Of a stretch of 15,693 nt of DNA, positions 4,505-15,691 are shown one piece after another. The stretch is from the NCBI GenBank assembly GCA_964247055.1, contig OZ176061.1, positions 1 through 15,693 on the forward strand, written 5' to 3'. Within the stretch, counting starts at the first letter, position 1. Each line of letters starts with the position of its first letter. Made by a program: the position numbers and the translations under genes. This stretch comes from Paragordius varius. Taxonomy: Eukaryota > Animalia > Nematomorpha. The notes under the pieces are model-generated. The model was given only the letters and a program-made list of their open reading frames with translations. It searched no databases and was not told where the DNA came from.

Positions 4505-5250
4505 GCTAGAAGTCCTTTTTCAAAAAGACTAACTTTGTTACGACTTATCCTTCTAAGGAGTGACGGGCGATATGTGTATAGTGAAGAGTAATTTTCAAAA
4601 ATTTTTTCTTAATATATTTTTAATTTACTTTCAAATCCTAAATTGTTTGTAAGTATTTAACTACAAACTAAATTATAAAATCAGTCCTATTGTGCCCCAC
4701 CAAACTATTATAACACTGTATATTGATTTGAATTGATTTAATAAAATAAATTAAATAATTTCTTTATTTTTTAACAACTATATACAAGAGTTTACATAAT
4801 ATAAGGTTTATAGCGTACTATCTATTTAATTTGGCTAAACCCTTTGATTTAATTCACTACTGCCAATTTTTTAAGTTTCCTTTTTATACTACTATAGTTA
4901 TATGTAAATTCAATAGTAGGGTATCTAATCCTAGTTTTTAATTAACTTTTTCTAAATCAAGGATTTAATATTTTTATTTATAATCAATTTTACCTTTATT
5001 ATAATAAGAAATCCTTTTTAATTTTTACTTAACAAGTATTTTCCCTTTTTGTATAACCGCTAATGCTGGCACAATTATTCTTAAGAGTATTTTACCTACA
5101 AACAGATACCCTCGTTTACGTTATGATGTCTTACTTCACACATGTTGAAAAACAGCTTTACCTGTTAGTATATTTACCTACTTGTGAGTGCTTATAAGAA
5201 TTTAGTAAAATATACTTCATAAATCAAAACTAAATTTCTCTTTATGATGA
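4505..5250 (-). rRNA. rrnS: Small subunit (12S) rRNA; 5' end inferred from the adjacent trnC
   Basis: Minus strand carries GTGCCAGC...GCGGTTATAC (~5052-5073), CATATCGCCCGTCACTCC (~4557-4574) and GATAAGTCGTAACAAAG plus the terminal helix (~4510-4548). The 5' boundary is uncertain. Confidence 0.85.
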
Positions 5251-5417: not shown

Positions 5418-6341
5418 CTAAATTCTTATAAGCACTCACAAGTAGGTAAATATACTAACAGGTAAAGCTGTTTTTCAACATGTGTGAAGTAAGACATCAT
5501 AACGTAAACGAGGGTATCTACCACGAGCTCACAAAAAATACAAGCAGGGGAGTATGAAATATCATGATATTTCATACTCCCCTGCTTGTATTTTTTGTGA
5601 GCTCGTGGTAGATACCACGAGCTCACAAAAAATACAAGCAAAAAATATAATAGCTATGTATTCAGCTATGAATACAACTGCAAATACTCCTGAATATATT
5701 TCTACATTAAATCCGGATACTAACTCTGATTCTCCTTCTATTAAGTCATAAGGGGTTCGATTTGTCTCTGCTAAAGCACACATTAACAGTAAAGCTATTA
5801 GGGGTACTAGTACCCCTAATAGCTTTACTGTTAATGTGTGCTTTAGCAGAGACAAATCGAACCCCTTATGACTTAATAGAAGGAGAATCAGAGTGAATAT
5901 TAAAACTAACTCATAAGATACAGCCTGAGTTAAAGCTCGATATCCACCTAGCAAAGAATATTTAGAATTTGATAATCACCCAATAAACAAAATTATGTAA
6001 ACACCTAACCCTAACATCACCATTACAAATAATATCGTAAAATCCATTATTAGAGCGAAAGATGCTTGGGTTAATACAACTTCGAAAAGGACCAAATAAA
6101 GTCCTAGTGATAGGACTGGTGCAGCCATTCATAGACGCAGTAAAACTATTCTCAAAAAGAAGCTTCTTTTTGAGAATAGTTTTACTGCGTCTATGAATGG
6201 CTGCACCAGTCCTATCACTAGGACTTTATTTGGTCCTTTTCGAAGTTGTATTAACCCAAGCATCTTTCGCTCTAATAATGTAAAAAAGGATATACCCACC
6301 AAAAGAGATGCTTGGGTTAATACAACTTCGAAAAGAACCAA
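5418..6341 (-). CDS. nad1: NADH dehydrogenase subunit 1 (307 aa; start TTG 6341 abutting trnL2, or ATT 6344)
   Basis: Motifs [44 protein letters not shown] and WARGSYPRLRYD. TAG at 5418-5420 and the frame is continuous in table 5. Confidence 0.93.
5513..5640. repeat. nad1 palindrome 5513-5616 (104 bp) plus an overlapping hairpin 5583-5610/5613-5640
   Basis: Centre TCATGA at 5564/5565. Direct repeat 5519-5546 = 5613-5640. Confidence 0.93.
5723..5894. repeat. Perfect 172-bp palindrome in nad1
   Basis: Centre ACTAGT at 5808/5809. Confidence 0.95.
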
Positions 6342-6406: not shown

Positions 6407-6666
6407 TTTTATAGTGGGTCACTGTTAATACCCGCCCCCCACCCCATCCTTACGTCCTTCTCTCCCCTCGTCTTCCTCTCTCCTTTCGTCACACTCGTCC
6501 GTTCACTCGTAAGATATCTTTCTATTATATACTCTTTCCTTATTCTTGTTATCTAGTATGCTCAATATCCAGTATGTACAGAGGTGGTCCTCGTCAGGCC
6601 CGAAAAAATTTAGGTGATGGTATACTATGAATATGGTTCCCCAAAATTCATGCACCCTTATCAATA
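6407..6666. promoter_or_regulatory. Non-coding region (candidate control region part) with a C-run and a polypyrimidine tract
   Basis: No gene found between trnL2 and trnV. It has CCCGCCCCCCACCCC at 6431-6445 and a pyrimidine tract at about 6446-6500. Regulatory function is inferred. Confidence 0.55.
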
Positions 6667-6724
6667 ATTATGGTGTTCTATTTTCTTTATGTAACAAAGA
6701 TGTTTTTAATTAAACTAACCATAA
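6667..6724 (-). tRNA. trnV: tRNA-Val (TAC), T-armless
   Basis: TTATGGT-TA-GTTT-AATTAA-AAAC-A-TCTTT-GTTACAT-AAAGA-AAATAGAAC-ACCATAA. Confidence 0.85.
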
Positions 6725-7448
6725 ATAAATACAGATTTTTTTTATTCTATATTATTTATGTTAAAATCTTGTCCGTCGGACAAGATTTTAACATAAATAA
6801 ATACAGATTTTTTTTATTCTATATTATTTATGTTAAAATCTTGTCCGACGGACAAGATTTTAACATAAATAAATACAGATTTTTTTTATTCTATATTATT
6901 TATGTTAAAATCTTGTCCGTCGGACAAGATTTTAACATAAATAAATACAGATTTTTTTTATTCTATATTATTTATGTTAAAATCTTGTCCGACGGACAAG
7001 ATTTTAACATAAATAAATACAGATTTTTTTTATTCTATATTATTTATGTTAAAATCTTGTCCGTCGGACAAGATTTTAACATAAATAAATACAGATTTTT
7101 TTTATTCTATATTATTTATGTTAAAATCTTGTCCGTCGGACAAGATTTTAACATAAATAAATACAGATTTTTTTTATTCTATATTATTTATGTTAAAATC
7201 TTGTCCGTCGGACAAGATTTTAACATAAATAAATACAGATTTTTTTTATTCTATATTATTTATGTTAAAATCTTGTCCGTCGGACAAGATTTTAACATAA
7301 ATAAATACAGATTTTTTTTATTCTATATTATTTATGTTAAAATCTTGTCCGTCGGACAAGATTTTAACATAAATAAATACAGATTTTTTTTATTCTATAT
7401 TATTTATGTTAAAATCTTGTCCGACGGACAAGATTTTAACATAAATAA
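6720..7448. repeat. Tandem array of 10 x 72-bp units (plus a partial unit), each with a 24-bp-arm hairpin
   Basis: The unit repeats exactly every 72 bp from 6721 to 7440. The only variable base is the hairpin centre (T,A,T,A,T,T,T,T,T,A). Confidence 0.97.
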
Positions 7449-7449
7449 T

Positions 7450-8982
<1,533 letters not shown>

Positions 8983-9006: not shown

Positions 9007-9693
9007 ATTAACCCATGACGTTCAATCTTTCTTCAAGATATATTATCTTCTAGCTCAGAGTATTTGTATCTGCTTCATGAATTCGCTATAGTTTTTATCT
9101 CCGGTATTACTGTAATAGTGTTTTTTATATTTGGGTTTATTTTAATATCTAAATTCTTTTCTTTAAAATCAGCGCATATCAACATAGTAGAATTTTTATG
9201 AACATCTCTTCCTGTACTAGTTCTTCTAGTAATGGCTCTTCCTACCGTGAAAATTTTATATTCTAATGAAGACTCTCATTGACCAGATCTAACTGTTAAA
9301 GTCATAGGTGCTCAATGATACTGAAACTACGAATACTCTGATTTTCTTGACCTAAATTTTGATTCATATATGAGTCAAAATTTAGGTCAAGAAAATCAGA
9401 GTATTCGACTCATGGATACAGATAACCATCTAATCTTACCCTTTAAGGTAATAACTCGTTTACTAATCTCATCAAATGACGTTATTCATTCTTTTGCTTT
9501 ACCTCAATTTTCAATCAAATCTGATGCTATCCCAGGTCGTATTAATCAATGCTTTTTACTTCCTAAAAAACCACTTACAACTTATGGTCAATGCTCAGAA
9601 ATCTGCGGAGTTAACCACTCTTTTATACCAATTACTTTAGATTGTATCTCAACCAATAATTTTATCTCTTGAATTAATAGAAAAATTAATTAA
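9007..9693 (+). CDS. cox2: Cytochrome c oxidase subunit 2 (228 aa, ATT start)
   Basis: FLQD, GAQWYWNYEYSD, DVIHSF, DAIPGR and the CuA motif GQCSEICGVNHSF. Confidence 0.96.
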
Positions 9694-9833: not shown

Positions 9834-9950
9834 ATACCCCACTTTTACCCTTCTCTCCCCTCGTCTTCCTTGCTAATTATTTTTTTCTTGTTAATAATAG
9901 CATTTTCTTTATATTTATCTTTCTTACCTGTTAACAACCACACAAATTAA
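9834..9950 (+). CDS. atp8: ATP synthase subunit 8 (38 aa)
   Basis: MPHFYP start resembling MPQ, a hydrophobic core, and position between trnD and atp6. ATA to TAA. Confidence 0.75.
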   Translation: MPHFYPSLPSSSLLIIFFLLIIAFSLYLSFLPVNNHTN

Positions 9951-9953
9951 CAT

Positions 9954-10634
9954 ATGATAATAAACCTCTTTTCTAGTTTTGATAGTTACAGTTTCAATAG
10001 CTATATGTATTTTTTCTTGTATTTTGTGATATCTTCATGGTGAATCATTATATCACAAAATACAAGAAAAAATACATATAGCTATTGAAACTGTAACTCA
10101 ACCTACTTTAAAGCTTTTTACAGAGTTGCTGGCCCATCTAGATGGGCCAGCAACTCTGTAAAAAGCTTTAAAGTAGGTTGAGTTACAGTTTCAATAGCTA
10201 TATGTATTTTTTCTTGTATTTTGTGATATAATGTTTTAGGGTTGTTTCCCTATATTTTTCCTGTTACAGCCATATTTTCTATTATTTTTCCTATGAGTTT
10301 AATATTATTTTTTATTAGATTTTTCTTTATTATTAAAAACTTCTCACTATACAAACTTATCCCCTCAGGTAGACCTGTTATGTTAAGACCTTTTCTTTTC
10401 ATAATTGAACTAGTGTCTTTAATAATCCGCCCGCTAACTCTGTCATTACGATTGTCAGCCAACATCACCAGCGGTCACATCCTCATTCATCTTGTGTCTT
10501 CTTCTATAGTAGGGGGATTTTTAATGTCTTTTACACCTTTTTTTATATTAAATATCCTCGAAATGAGAGTAGCTCTTATCCAATCTTATGTGTTTATGTC
10601 ATTAATTTCGCTGTACATTAGAGACTCATCTTAG
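9954..10634 (+). CDS. atp6: ATP synthase subunit 6 (226 aa)
   Basis: MMMNLFSSFD, NVLGLFPYIF, IRPLTLSLRLSANITSGH, ALIQSYVF. The frame is open through the repeats. Confidence 0.95.
9984..10233. repeat. atp6 compound repeat: 188-bp palindrome 10046-10233 plus inverted repeat 9984-10032/10050-10098
   Basis: Centre TCTAGA at 10139/10140. Direct repeat 9984-10032 = 10181-10229. Confidence 0.95.
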
Positions 10635-10635
10635 T

Positions 10636-11421
10636 ATGATAACTAACCCTTTTTATCTGGTTTCACCGTCCTCTTGGCCTTTATTTGTAGCAATAAGAGT
10701 TGCAGCTTTAGCTGCAACTCTTATTGCTACCATGTGAAAAACCTCTTGGCCTTTATTTGTAGCAATAAGAGTTGCAGCTTTAGCTGCAACTCTTATTTGC
10801 TGGGCAGTAGATCTTTCACGAGAAAACAATTCTACAGGTCTAATATCTTTAAATTTAAAATCTTGTATAAAATTTAGTTTTATGTTGTTTATTTTATCAG
10901 AAATTATATTCTTTATATCTTTTTTTTGAAGTTACTTTCATTTTAGATTAAGCCCCGATCCTGAAATTGGATCTTCTTGACCTCCTATAGGAGTAATCCC
11001 TATTCCATTTTTTGAAGTACCTCTTTTGAATACTCTGATTTTATTATCTAGAGGTGCTTTGATTACTTGGGCTCATCATTCAATATTCTCCAGAAAAAAT
11101 GCTATTTCTATCTCTCTTTTAACTTTATTTACTGTAATTTTAGGAGTATACTTTGCTTTATTGCAAATGGAAGAATATACCTCTTCTTTATTCAGTGTAA
11201 ACGATAGTTGTTTCGGTAGAGTATTTTTCACCACTACTGGTTTTCATGGTACTCATATTATCATTGGGTCATTAATACTTCTTGTTTCTCTGCCCTCATT
11301 TTTAATTTCAGGTGATTCTACTATCTCTATTACTTTTTTTGAGCTATCTGCCTGATACTGACATTTTGTCGATGTAGTATGACTATTTTTATTCTTAATT
11401 TTCTACTGATGGGGTGGGTAA
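10636..11421 (+). CDS. cox3: Cytochrome c oxidase subunit 3 (261 aa)
   Basis: SWPL, DLSRE, LSEIMFFMSFFWSYFH, WPPMG, LNTLILLSSG, TTGFHGTH, WYWHFVDVVW. Confidence 0.95.
10670..10797. repeat. cox3 56-bp direct repeat at a 72-bp offset, each copy carrying a hairpin
   Basis: 10670-10725 = 10742-10797. Hairpins at 10687-10730 and 10764-10797. Confidence 0.95.
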
Positions 11422-11446
11422 TTGATTGATTGTTTTAATATCTGCG

Positions 11447-11506
11447 GCTATTTTAGTATAAAAAGTACATTTAATTTCCAATTAAAAAGTAGAAATAAAA
11501 ATAGCA
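11447..11506 (+). tRNA. trnG: tRNA-Gly (TCC), no evident T-arm
   Basis: Acceptor GCTATTT/AAATAGC, anticodon arm TTTAA-TTTCCAA-TTAAA. Confidence 0.85.
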
Positions 11507-11851
11507 ATACTTACATGTCTTATTGCTATTTTTATTTCTACTTTTTTAAGAGCCACTATTGCTTTAGCCTATCAAATATTTAAGAGAAAAGGGAGAGCGT
11601 GAAAGACCTACTCTGTCAATTCCGCATTCGAATGCGGAATTGACAGAGTAGGTCTTTCACGCTCTCCCTTTTCTCTTAAATATTTGATAGTAACTATTAT
11701 ATTTATTATCTTTGATTTAGAGGTTAGTCTTTTTGTTATATCGCCTGTAATCTCATCTTCAAAAGAAAGTATTTTTATTTTCATTATCATCAACATCATT
11801 ACTCTAGGGTTTATGTATGAACTATATTATAATAAGTTTACATGAGTATAG
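11507..11851 (+). CDS. nad3: NADH dehydrogenase subunit 3 (114 aa)
   Basis: AFECGID, SPFSLKYL, FIIFDLEV. ATA to TAG. Confidence 0.93.
11569..11690. repeat. Perfect 122-bp palindrome in nad3
   Basis: Centre TTC|GAA at 11629/11630. Confidence 0.96.
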
Positions 11852-12073: not shown

Positions 12074-12132
12074 AGAGCAGTGTATTTGCTTACTGCTAAT
12101 TAGCTTCAAAGATTTACAATCTTGCTGCTCTA
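12074..12132 (+). tRNA. trnS1: tRNA-Ser1 (GCT), D-armless
   Basis: Acceptor AGAGCAG/CTGCTCT, loop CTGCTAA, T-arm AAGAT/ATCTT. Confidence 0.82.
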
Positions 12133-12268
12133 TAAGTCTTTTCGTCTTAACCACTCAACTAGCTAGTTGAGTGGTTAAGACGAAAAGACTTATTATCTGC
12201 TCTATAAGTCTTTTCGTCTTAACCACTCAACTAGCTAGTTGAGTGGTTAAGACGAAAAGACTTATTAT
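12125..12268. repeat. 72-bp tandem duplication at the trnS1/nad4L junction, each copy with a 62-bp palindrome
   Basis: 12125-12196 = 12197-12268. Palindromes at 12132-12193 and 12204-12265. Confidence 0.95.
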
Positions 12269-12470: not shown

Positions 12471-13820
12471 ATGATAACTATTATAAAGAATGCCGCTGCT
12501 GTTATTTTTATTAAGCCTGAACCTCAAGCTCAAATTATCATCATATGTCTTAGATGAATAGTTTTAATATACCCTTTTTCAAGAAAATGGTTATTTTTTG
12601 ATAGCTCATCTATTGAGATTTCTAATCTTTTCAATAGAAATATTATATCCATTACTATAGTATTACTATTTTTATGAGTATCTCTAATAGTGACGCTATT
12701 AATCATAACCAGTATTAGTGAGACATTTAAACCTCTAATTAGAGGTTTAAATGTCTCACTAATACTGGTTATGATTAATAGCGTCACTATTAGAGATACT
12801 TTGGGGTTTTTTATTATGTTTGAGTTTTCTCTGTTACCCATCATGATGATAATTTGAGCTTGAGGTTCAGGCTTAATAAAAATAACAGCAGCGGCATTCT
12901 TGCTAATCTATACTAGATTAGCAAGAATGCCGCTGCTGTTATTTTTATTAAGCCTGAACCTCAAGCTCAAATTATCATCATGATGAGGAGTATCCATCAT
13001 GATGATAATTTGAGCTTGAGGTTCAGGCTTAATAAAAATAACAGCAGCGGCATTCTTTATTAAGCTGCCTATTTATATCTTTCACTCATGGTTACCTAAA
13101 GCACATGTAGAAGCTTCTACATGTGGGTCTATGCTGCTAGCAGGTAGACTATTAAAGCTAGGGTCATTTGGCCTCTTTAAGAGTCTACCTGCTAGCAGCA
13201 TAGACCCACATGTAGAAGCTTCTACATGTGGGTCTATGCTGCTAGCAGGTAGACTAATTTCTTCTTTTATCATAGTCTTACTAAGTGATGGAAAAATAAT
13301 AATTGCTTTTTCAAGAGTAACACACATAACATTAATAGCGTTAGCTTTTTTTGGGGTTTCTACCTCCGGGTTTTACTCCTTATTGTACGTTAGTTTATCT
13401 CACGGATTTACAAGTTCTTGTATATTTTTTATATTTTTTTTAATCTACAACAAATTGTTAACGCGTAACCTTATATTAATTAAATCATCTAATAAGTATA
13501 TAACCTCGTTATTATTTTATTATGTGTACTTTATCATTTTAATATTTAACGCAGGGTGCCCGCCTTCTTTAAATGTAGCAGGTGAAATTATAACTTTTTG
13601 AGCTGTGATAAATGTTTCAAACTATTGAAGTTGATTTTTAATTGTTGGATCTATATGCTCATTATTAATAGGTTTACTTTTATTCATTAACACTATAAAT
13701 ATTACAAATCACTCCTTAGGTTCTCAGAATTTCTCACAAACTTTCATATCAACAAACTTTATTCTATTTGTTTTTTTTATAGCCCATTTACTCCCTTGAT
13801 TGTTTCTAAACTGAATTTAA
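12471..13820 (+). CDS. nad4: NADH dehydrogenase subunit 4 (449 aa)
   Basis: FFIMFEFSLLP, HSWLPKAHVEA, SLSHGFTSS, NAGCPPSLN. Continuous in table 5, ATG to TAA. Confidence 0.95.
12677..12800. repeat. Perfect 124-bp palindrome in nad4
   Basis: Centre TAA|TTA at 12738/12739. Confidence 0.95.
12839..13057. repeat. nad4 double inverted repeat (12839-12910/12914-12985 and 12923-12985/12995-13057) with a further copy at 12486-12544
   Basis: Direct repeat 12839-12901 = 12995-13057. 12486-12544 = 12923-12981. Confidence 0.94.
13102..13256. repeat. nad4 compound repeat (inverted repeat 13102-13150/13182-13230; palindrome 13182-13255)
   Basis: Direct repeat 13102-13151 = 13207-13256. Confidence 0.95.
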
Positions 13821-14041: not shown

Positions 14042-15691
14042 TTCTCCTTTATAATAACTAACTTAAAGTTTGTTGATATATACATTAACTATGACCCTTT
14101 AAGATTTTCTTTTATATTAAATTTAATAGTAGTTTTTTTAATAATTATTCTTTACAGATTTTTTTACATAGAAAAATCTGACTTTAAACTAGGGTTTATG
14201 GGTGTAACTAGTGTTTTCTTAATTTCTATAGTAATTATAGTTCTGTCTTCTTCCCTACCAGTTATTTTACTCGCTTGAGACTCACTGGGCCTTTCCTCTT
14301 TTTTATTAGTTTTGTTTTACAATAATTACTATAGAGAAAATAAAAGACTGGTCACATTAGTTATAAACCGTTTAGGTGACGCTTGCCTTATCATCTCTTT
14401 TCCTTTAATTTTTTCAAAATATGACGCTAATATAAGTTTAATAAATTCATTAATATGTAATTTTACATCTGTGGACTCCTTAATTCTAGTATTACTAATC
14501 ACAGCTTCTTTTATAAAAGCAGCTCAACTACCATGAAGTGCATGGCTGCTAGCAGCCATGGCTGCTCCAACACCTATTTCTTCACTTGTTCACTCTAGCA
14601 CTTTGGTGTGTGCAGGAGTCATTCTTTTCACCAAAGTGCTAGAGTGAACAAGTGAAGAAATAGGTGTTGGAGCAGCCATGGCTGCTTTAGTTTACATTAG
14701 TTTTATAATATCATCTATCTCGTCTACAAAAAATTTTGATCTAAAAAAAATCATTGCTCTAAGTACCATAAACCAAATATCTTTCTTATTAATTATCACA
14801 ATAAGTGTAAACCAGTATTTTATAGTATTTCATATGATTAGCCATGCTGTTTTTAAAAGAAATACTTTTATAATAGCCGGTTGCTTATTTCATAACTCAA
14901 AAAGATCACAAGAATACCGTTTTAATTCATCTAATAGAATTAGTAATTATTCAGTATTCCTACAGAGAGCTTTTATATCTCTATACTCTCTATCAAGACT
15001 GCCGTGATCGATAGGTTTTTACTCAAAGGAGCAAACTTTGTCTTCATCTTTATGAAAGGAGACTGCTCCTTTCATCTCATTGATGCTATTCTTTTTCATT
15101 TTTTACTCTTTTTTCTACTCATATCTTATTATAGCATCAATGAGATGAAAGGAGCAGTCTCCTTTCATAAAGATGAAGACAAAGTTTGCTCCTTTGAGTA
15201 AAAACCTATCGATCACGGCAGTCTTGATAGGGGTTTTTAGAATTTCAGGAGCAAACTTTGTCTTCATCTTAATAAGTCCTTCTCTCCCCTCGTCTTCCTC
15301 TCTCCTTTCACTGTCTCTAATTTTAAGACCTTTTATCACCGGGAAGTATATCTACTTGAGACACTTTCAACCGTTTTCAAGGATAGTAAATACAAATTAC
15401 TATCCTTGAAAACGGTTGAAAGTGTCTCAAGTAGATATACTTCCCACCCTTCTAGGATTTTCATTATTATCTCTACTCTGTCTCAGAAAAAAGAGAGTAG
15501 AGATAATAATGAAAATCCTAGAAGGGTGGGAAGTATATCTACTTGAGACACTTTCAACCGTTTTCAAGGATAGTAATTTGTATTTACTATCCTTGAAAAC
15601 GGTTGAAAGTGTCTCAAGTAGATATACTTCCCACCCTTCTAGGATTTTCATTATTATCTCTACTCTCTTTTTTCTGAGACAATTATTTTAA
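13931..15691 (+). CDS. nad5: NADH dehydrogenase subunit 5 (586 aa from ATG 13931; in-frame ATC at 13898 also possible)
   Basis: [63 protein letters not shown]. Continuous to TAA 15691. Confidence 0.95.
14541..14686. repeat. nad5 inverted repeat 14551-14608/14629-14686 plus a 20-bp palindrome 14541-14560
   Basis: 58-bp arms with a 20-nt loop. Confidence 0.93.
14990..15270. repeat. nad5 inverted repeat 14990-15089/15131-15230 plus a 24-bp third copy at 15247-15270
   Basis: 100-bp arms with a 41-nt loop. 15027-15050 = 15247-15270. Confidence 0.93.
15341..15681. repeat. nad5 3' triple overlapping inverted repeats
   Basis: Arms 15341-15389/15397-15445 (49 bp), 15341-15479/15494-15632 (139 bp) and 15479-15576/15584-15681 (98 bp). 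Confidence 0.94.

Follow-up and report, generated by a model that had tools for sequence, protein, structure and literature searches.

The window analysed here is the whole stretch of 15,693 bases from Paragordius varius, and it is a complete hairworm mitogenome with perfect coding palindromes, the system described by Mikhailov et al. in 2019 (PMC6649704). About 70% of the bases are A+T, and the 13 usual protein genes are present under the invertebrate mitochondrial code. The + strand carries cox1, cox2, trnK, trnD, atp8, atp6, cox3, trnG, nad3, several tRNAs, nad4l, nad4, trnH, nad5 and trnF, in that order, and the opposite strand carries trnW, nad2, trnM, trnP, trnL1, the rRNAs, nad1 and trnL2. 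The tRNAs were called by ARAGORN in mitochondrial mode, its bacterial mode returning none. This gene and tRNA order is the one published for gordiid hairworms (PMC10380579).

Nematomorph mitochondrial genes are known for perfect coding palindromes, which are seemingly kept identical by active conversion of repeats (PMC6649704). Gene conversion or template switching during replication has been proposed for both the origin and the upkeep of these structures, and overlapping hairpins (an A-A′-A pattern) yield direct repeats, as in nad1 and nad6 of other hairworms (PMC6649704). In the window, 80 inverted-repeat pairs were found, many of them with perfect arms of 50–208 nt located within genes. The feature described here lies in cox3, the gene for subunit III of cytochrome oxidase, and comprises the following elements.

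10636–11421, + strand: cox3 coding sequence, 261 codons plus TAA (stop 11419–11421), table-5 translation, Pfam PF00510
10670–10725, + strand: repeat copy 1, the native helix-1 segment S13–I30, putative donor, aligned with the conserved S/P-W-P-L motif of helix 1
10670–10686, + strand: repeat head, 17 nt encoding S-W-P-L-F, directly repeated at 10742–10758, without an inverted partner
10726–10741, + strand: unique 16-nt spacer, encoding together with the adjacent codons the hairworm-conserved A-T-M-W-K-T
10742–10797, + strand: repeat copy 2, S37–I54, covering the loop end and helix 2 over its N-terminal two thirds, putative acceptor
11419–11446, + strand: cox3 3′ end, with a probable polyadenylation site at 11446, directly before trnG (11447–11506, ARAGORN)

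A 56-nt direct repeat in cox3

A repeat search of the window returned two 56-nt copies that are 100% identical and in frame, 72 nt apart from start to start. They correspond to the repeat at a 24-codon offset described in the first-pass annotation, and both encode the same peptide, SWPLFVAMSVAALAATLI, which occupies residues 13–30 and again 37–54 of COX3. An exact repeat of 56 nt is far longer than chance would give within 15.7 kb. Within the repeat, the 18 complete third codon positions are all identical between the copies, so the event is either recent or the copies have been kept identical. The identity ends abruptly at 10797, and the 16 nt on the 3′ side of each copy are mutually dissimilar. 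In the 188 full-length COX3-like proteins that were fetched, exact internal repeats reach at most 5 aa, compared with 18 aa here.

A length-neutral change in helix 2

The nearest matches of P. varius COX3 in the public protein collection are the COX3 proteins of five hairworms (Gordionus wolterstorffii, Parachordodes, Chordodes, Gordionus alpestris and Gordius sp.), to which it is 51–57% identical. A word-based protein search with a stop-free piece of 124 aa yielded nothing but fragments, none above 57% identity; an exhaustive protein search led to the 261-aa COX3 of G. wolterstorffii, with the query piece at identical residue numbers. These five hairworm proteins were aligned with MAFFT together with P. 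varius COX3 and those of seven other animals (an insect, a mammal, a mollusc, an annelid, a nemertean, a myriapod and a crustacean).

The earlier reading of the locus held that the second copy overwrote existing sequence instead of adding to it, and the alignments bear this out. The protein has 261 aa, as had been stated, and falls within the hairworm range of 259–264 aa. W14 and R62 are 48 residues apart, within the 46–51 of the hairworms, and this distance is 47 in all seven non-hairworm animals, so that both figures originally given (48 here, 47 in insects) hold in the alignment. Each of the three stop-free pieces of cox3 matches PF00510, at model positions 2–30, 39–95 and 114–216 with E-values of 0.023 (by itself below the curated cut-off), 8.6e-08 and 6.4e-32. 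Residues 5–33 correspond to model 2–30 and residues 41–97 to model 39–95, a collinearity that excludes room for 24 extra residues. The match to G. wolterstorffii COX3 is free of gaps, with the ATMWK spacer identical and with W56 and R62-E63 aligned; copy 2 stands opposite GEGGFFVVALIMFSFMFM in that species and opposite equally unrelated segments in the others. Alignment to solved structures places copy 2 and the residues downstream on helix 2 and helix 3 of the yeast and mammalian subunit III. No 24-aa insertion, which the first-pass annotation had named as one observation that would contradict it, was found in the alignment of P. varius with the 12 other COX3 proteins. Between helix 1 and helix 2 there are no more than 5 ungapped matches in those 12 taxa, against 18 here.

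The proposal that helix 2 as such had been replaced stands for part of the helix. The replaced residues, 37–54, comprise the loop end and about two thirds of the helix from its start, and the helix end with C55, W56, D59, R62 and E63 is native. A hydropathy scan still shows seven hydrophobic segments.

Several features of the protein bear on how it may tolerate such a change. According to the alignment, the copied segment lies in the least conserved stretch of COX3: mean conservation of the overwritten columns is 0.37 against 0.65 overall, and 0.39 against 0.71 among hairworms. The new segment has a hydropathy of 1.84, within the 1.21–2.26 of the native segments. Translation and alignment show that the motifs W-P-L, R-E, F-I-x-S-E, W-A-H-H and W-Y-W-H-F-V-D-V-V-W are kept, and the tract is bounded exactly by conserved features, with the ATMWK spacer to its left and W56 to its right. 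Subunit III is V-shaped in the bovine and bacterial structures, with helices 1 and 2 as a separate arm that varies more than any other part of it.

Hairpins formed by the two copies

Each copy contains a hairpin, and the two copies together form a third.

10687–10730, unstranded: hairpin A, perfect 21-nt arms (10687–10707/10710–10730) with a 2-nt loop
10764–10797, unstranded: hairpin B, perfect 16-nt arms (10764–10779/10782–10797) with a 2-nt loop, within copy 2
10689–10800, unstranded: composite hairpin, inverted repeat 10692–10730/10759–10797 with 39-nt arms, 95% complementary, 28-nt loop

Because the repeat unit is self-complementary, the two copies are direct and also inverted repeats of each other. 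In the composite structure the arms pair crosswise between the hairpins (A 5′ with B 3′, and A 3′ with B 5′), giving a stem of about 40 bp, and the 17-nt head sits in its loop. In hairpins A and B, third codon positions pair mutually. The minimum-energy fold of 10660–10810 is the single composite hairpin, at −74.6 kcal/mol as RNA against −36.9 ± 3.4 in shuffles (z −11.1), and at −45.1 kcal/mol as DNA (z −10.9). By this modelling, two folds are open to the cox3 copies, a pair of small hairpins or a single stem of about 40 bp.

The palindrome encodes a peptide of near mirror symmetry, VAMSVAALAATLIAT reading backwards as TAILTAALAAVSMAV. One may speculate that such a near-symmetric peptide could help a single sequence serve as two antiparallel helices.

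The presence of a hairpin in each copy makes the repeat part of the coding-palindrome system of hairworms and not the isolated oddity for which it was first taken. Nor is it the sole large repeat in a complex IV gene of this genome, as had been claimed, since cox2 contains a palindrome at 9330–9407, 78 nt long, with 39-nt arms that are 97% complementary and without a loop. Cytochrome oxidase genes have been said to be free of long palindromes in published hairworms, a remark that takes in cox2 and concerns four species, and this sparing was taken as pointing to differential regulation (PMC6649704). In Parachordodes pustulosus, cox2 and nad3 were reported without inverted repeats (PMC10380579). 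The nad3 gene of the window holds a perfect palindrome at 11569–11690 with 61-nt arms.

Origin of the repeat

Nearly all direct repeats in the window are wholly covered by a nearby inverted copy, and the cox3 repeat differs from them in this respect. For its 17-nt head no inverted copy was found in the whole window, the single match (at 6094, with 4 mismatches) being distant and attributable to chance. With no such partner for the head, at least the part encoding W-P-L-F calls for a true direct copy. We consider it likely that a 56-nt block of helix 1 was copied 72 nt downstream in this hairworm mitogenome, overwriting the loop end and the greater part of helix 2.

The copied block would have consisted of the S-W-P-L-F head and part of the 44-nt palindrome, and it would have replaced an equal length of sequence. 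Ectopic gene conversion could have produced such non-reciprocal copying of helix 1 onto helix 2, as could a double template switch at replication. Pre-existing identity at the left edge may have served as a seed, K-T-S being found also in Gordionus alpestris; judged from the protein sequences, the first five bases of the repeat (the end of a T/S codon and an S codon) may be older, shared sequence. Selection on the ATMWK spacer and on W56 would then have limited the extension of the tract. In a two-stage variant, the helix-2 region would first have become complementary to palindrome A, and hence equal to it, through the inverted-repeat process, and conversion between the identical tracts would then have spread leftward over the head until selection halted it. 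The direction of the copy event, its age and its single-step nature are what we infer.

A simpler account would dispense with direct copying altogether and treat the direct repeat as a pure by-product of overlapping inverted repeats, the helix-2 region having been converted to pair with palindrome A. It has merit for 39 of the 56 nt, which are palindromic and fully accounted for by the inverted-repeat process alone; direct repeats from overlapping hairpins are published (PMC6649704), and most of the others in the window are of that type. We nevertheless think this account improbable for the unit as a whole, given a 17-nt head that is directly repeated, has no inverted copy in the window and is located in the loop of the composite structure.

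We judge it just as improbable that a 72-nt tandem duplication, adding 24 aa and an extra helix, was followed by a loss of about 72 nt that compensated for it by taking out the duplicated spacer together with the original start of helix 2. The offset of exactly 72 nt, in frame, would fit such a history, and the genome has other 72-nt tandem repeats (12125–12268 and the array at 6576–7595). However, the eight-helix intermediate would invert the topology of the remaining COX3, so that strong counter-selection is to be expected; the sharp end of identity at 10797, with 16 dissimilar nt after the copies, also speaks against it, and the longer form is not among the contigs of two sequencing runs (X1 and X2, described below).

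The period of 72 nt is shared by the cox3 offset (10670–10797), a perfect 72 + 72 tandem at 12125–12268 on the trnS1/nad4l border and the array at 6576–7595. The latter is non-coding, lies in the trnL2/cox1 interval and consists of about 1 kb of 72-nt units with one hairpin per unit, which ARAGORN miscalls as trnV/trnD. Known hairworm control regions are said to be without tandem repeats (PMC10380579). No sequence similarity was found among the three 72-nt-period units, local alignment scores being no higher than those of shuffled controls.

Other in-frame exact direct repeats are present in nad6, nad1, nad4l and nad4 (twice). Those in nad6 (1730–2047), nad1 (6060–6335) and nad4 (12838–13057 and 13102–13256) have offsets of 291, 246, 156 and 105 nt, respectively, and, from the reading frames, should yield repeated peptides. 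The repeat units of nad1 and both of those in nad4 are 98–100% covered by a nearby inverted copy; the 27-nt pair in nad6 (1730–1756/2021–2047) is only 59% covered, with an uncovered run of 11 nt. A polypyrimidine element common to the non-coding region at 6454–6487, atp8 at 9849–9870 and nad5 at 15276–15309 is, unlike other repeats in the window, without a nearby inverted copy.

The repeat in sequencing runs and probable RNA

The repeat was traced in Logan contigs (k=31) of four runs from one study, here X1 to X4, which are probably the source data of the assembly itself. In X1, mitochondrial depth is about 4,900, and all listed contigs of the cox3 region are without differences from the window. 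They cover 10300–10654 (depth 4839), 10625–10678 (4871), 10650–10699 (4895), 10696–10771 (4900) and 10768–11500 (4901). The 76-nt contig at 10696–10771 spans the junctions of copy 1 with the spacer and of the spacer with copy 2 and reaches about 30 nt beyond them in both directions. With this bridging contig at the same depth as the single-copy flanks, the contigs are most simply joined as left flank, repeat, spacer, repeat and right flank, once per molecule; this copy number is taken from equal depth of k=31 contigs rather than from spanning reads. In X2, a contig covering 10696–10797 has 0 differences from the window.

Could the repeat be an assembly artefact or a minority heteroplasmic variant, the functional cox3 having a normal, non-repeated helix 2? 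Palindromes do cause coverage drops and assembly trouble in hairworm mitogenomes (PMC6649704), the runs and the assembly are not independent, and contigs with other joints at the repeat occur in X3 and X4. Against this, both junctions are carried at full depth in X1, where the spacer-bridging contig stands at 4900 between flanks of 4839–4901; no alternative helix 2 at comparable depth was found in X1 or X2, and the X2 contig across the spacer and copy 2 is exact. Moreover, the joints in X3 and X4 remove 76 nt, which is not a multiple of 3, or give in-frame stops, so that they could not encode a working COX3. We therefore regard an artefact or minority variant as highly improbable, and in annotation the cox3 repeat is not to be “fixed” as an assembly error.

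Another X2 contig, 11123–11446, ends just before trnG and continues with 27 A. The X2 contig of atp6 ceases to match at 10636, the atp6/cox3 boundary. The ends at 10636 and 11446 suggest separate polyadenylated mRNAs for atp6 and cox3, and monocistronic polyadenylated mRNAs have been reported for hairworms (PMC10380579). Judged by its poly-A ends alone, X2 is probably an RNA run, its record being silent on the type of library. Its depth dips over 10628–10750, and a drop in coverage at hairpins is a known sequencing bias in hairworm mitogenomes (PMC6649704, PMC10380579). No joints skipping over the cox3 repeat are present among the X2 contigs, and the repeat is probably present, unedited, in the mRNA.

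That copy 2 is an untranslated inserted element, bypassed by the ribosome or removed from the RNA in the manner of the yeast mitochondrial byp elements, is barely credible: identical copies would offer matching take-off and landing sequences and the X2 depth dip would fit, but translation of both copies gives a protein collinear with its relatives and with the family model, a 24-codon skip would delete a helix, X2 has no skipping joint, and such dips are the known hairpin bias (PMC6649704, PMC10380579).

Divergent and nuclear-like sequences

X3 and X4 contain a second sequence type, about 6–8% divergent from the window at a depth of about 170–490, beside a window-identical type at about 70–160. 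Over 10300–11500 of the window, the divergent type shows gaps of 3 and 6 nt and single-base gaps at 10920 and 11282. It is not among the contigs of X1 or X2. Joints that remove hairpins occur in X3 and X4 at 10687/10823, 10704/10793 and 10704/10802. Contigs of these runs that cross the repeat lead from the 5′ arm of hairpin A to the second head and on to the native end of helix 2, and lack 36 nt (10705–10740) and about 40 nt in the palindromic part of copy 2; the latter gap is bounded by a 7-nt direct repeat, TTATTTG, at 10753 and 10793. In another contig a head is joined straight to a diverged helix-2 end. The net changes in the X3 and X4 contigs lead to frameshifts or stops. The divergent type is either a nuclear copy of mitochondrial DNA, a second mitotype or an artefact of a polymerase skipping hairpins, as has been demonstrated in PCR (PMC6649704). 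The X3 and X4 contigs hold two heads, which suggests that the duplication predates this divergence.

A further contig of 778 nt (X1 and X4, depth 62) matches the window only at 10651–10704, over 54 nt with 5 differences, and has unrelated flanks. This contig probably represents a small nuclear piece of the helix-1 region of cox3.

Relation to known systems and implications

The cox3 repeat is real in the reads, length-neutral, located in the least conserved part of COX3 and absent from the five other hairworms compared. Its closest likeness is to the coding palindromes of nematomorphs, which are perfect inverted repeats in conserved coding sequences with both arms translated and length unchanged, and which show competing hairpins and direct repeats with perfect identity suggestive of active conversion (PMC6649704). 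It departs from that system in two ways. The 17-nt head is not derivable from inverted repeats, although the remaining 39 nt fit, and the structure is found in cox3 (another is in cox2), where the sequence of one helix is used twice in a protein of seven helices. An inverted repeat reported in cox3 of Parachordodes pustulosus shares with it a transcribed hairpin region and a coverage drop at the repeat (PMC10380579). The COX3 protein of that species has no repeated peptide, its helices 1 and 2 sharing at most 4 matches. Coordinates of cox3 hairpins in other hairworms are absent from the supplements of PMC6649704 and PMC10380579.

Palindromic DNA within protein-coding genes is also known from the palindromic elements of Rickettsia and the byp elements of yeast. 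Those elements add length to the gene by insertion, and they are either translated into additional residues or bypassed, whereas P. varius cox3 has no added length. The non-reciprocal copying that keeps copies identical resembles conversion between palindrome arms of the human and ape Y chromosomes (cited in PMC6649704), which is nuclear and involves far larger repeats in inverted arms; in cox3 a direct mitochondrial repeat of 56 nt is involved, and the process is a proposed one. Coding palindromes, competing hairpins, the direct repeats that result from them and the suspicion of conversion are thus already known. What is new is a head beyond the inverted-repeat explanation and one helix sequence overwriting the neighbouring helix.

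Hairworm coding palindromes now extend to the complex IV genes cox2 and cox3, and these structures weaken the suggestion that cox genes are spared through differential regulation (PMC6649704). For COX3 itself, the locus is a natural experiment in which about two thirds of a membrane helix in an essential respiratory subunit has been swapped for the sequence of its antiparallel neighbour with the gene left intact, and it bears on how little sequence information the arm of helices 1 and 2 requires.

For the hairworms, the 17-nt head, for which inverted-repeat logic is insufficient, points to a more general process of copying or conversion in their mitochondria. Tentatively, and with more doubt than confidence, we propose a homogenising activity on short direct as well as inverted repeats in hairworm mitochondria, able to overwrite a membrane helix with one of opposite orientation. 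If this is true, the repeat system is more than something that the protein tolerates, and it shapes the protein sequence.
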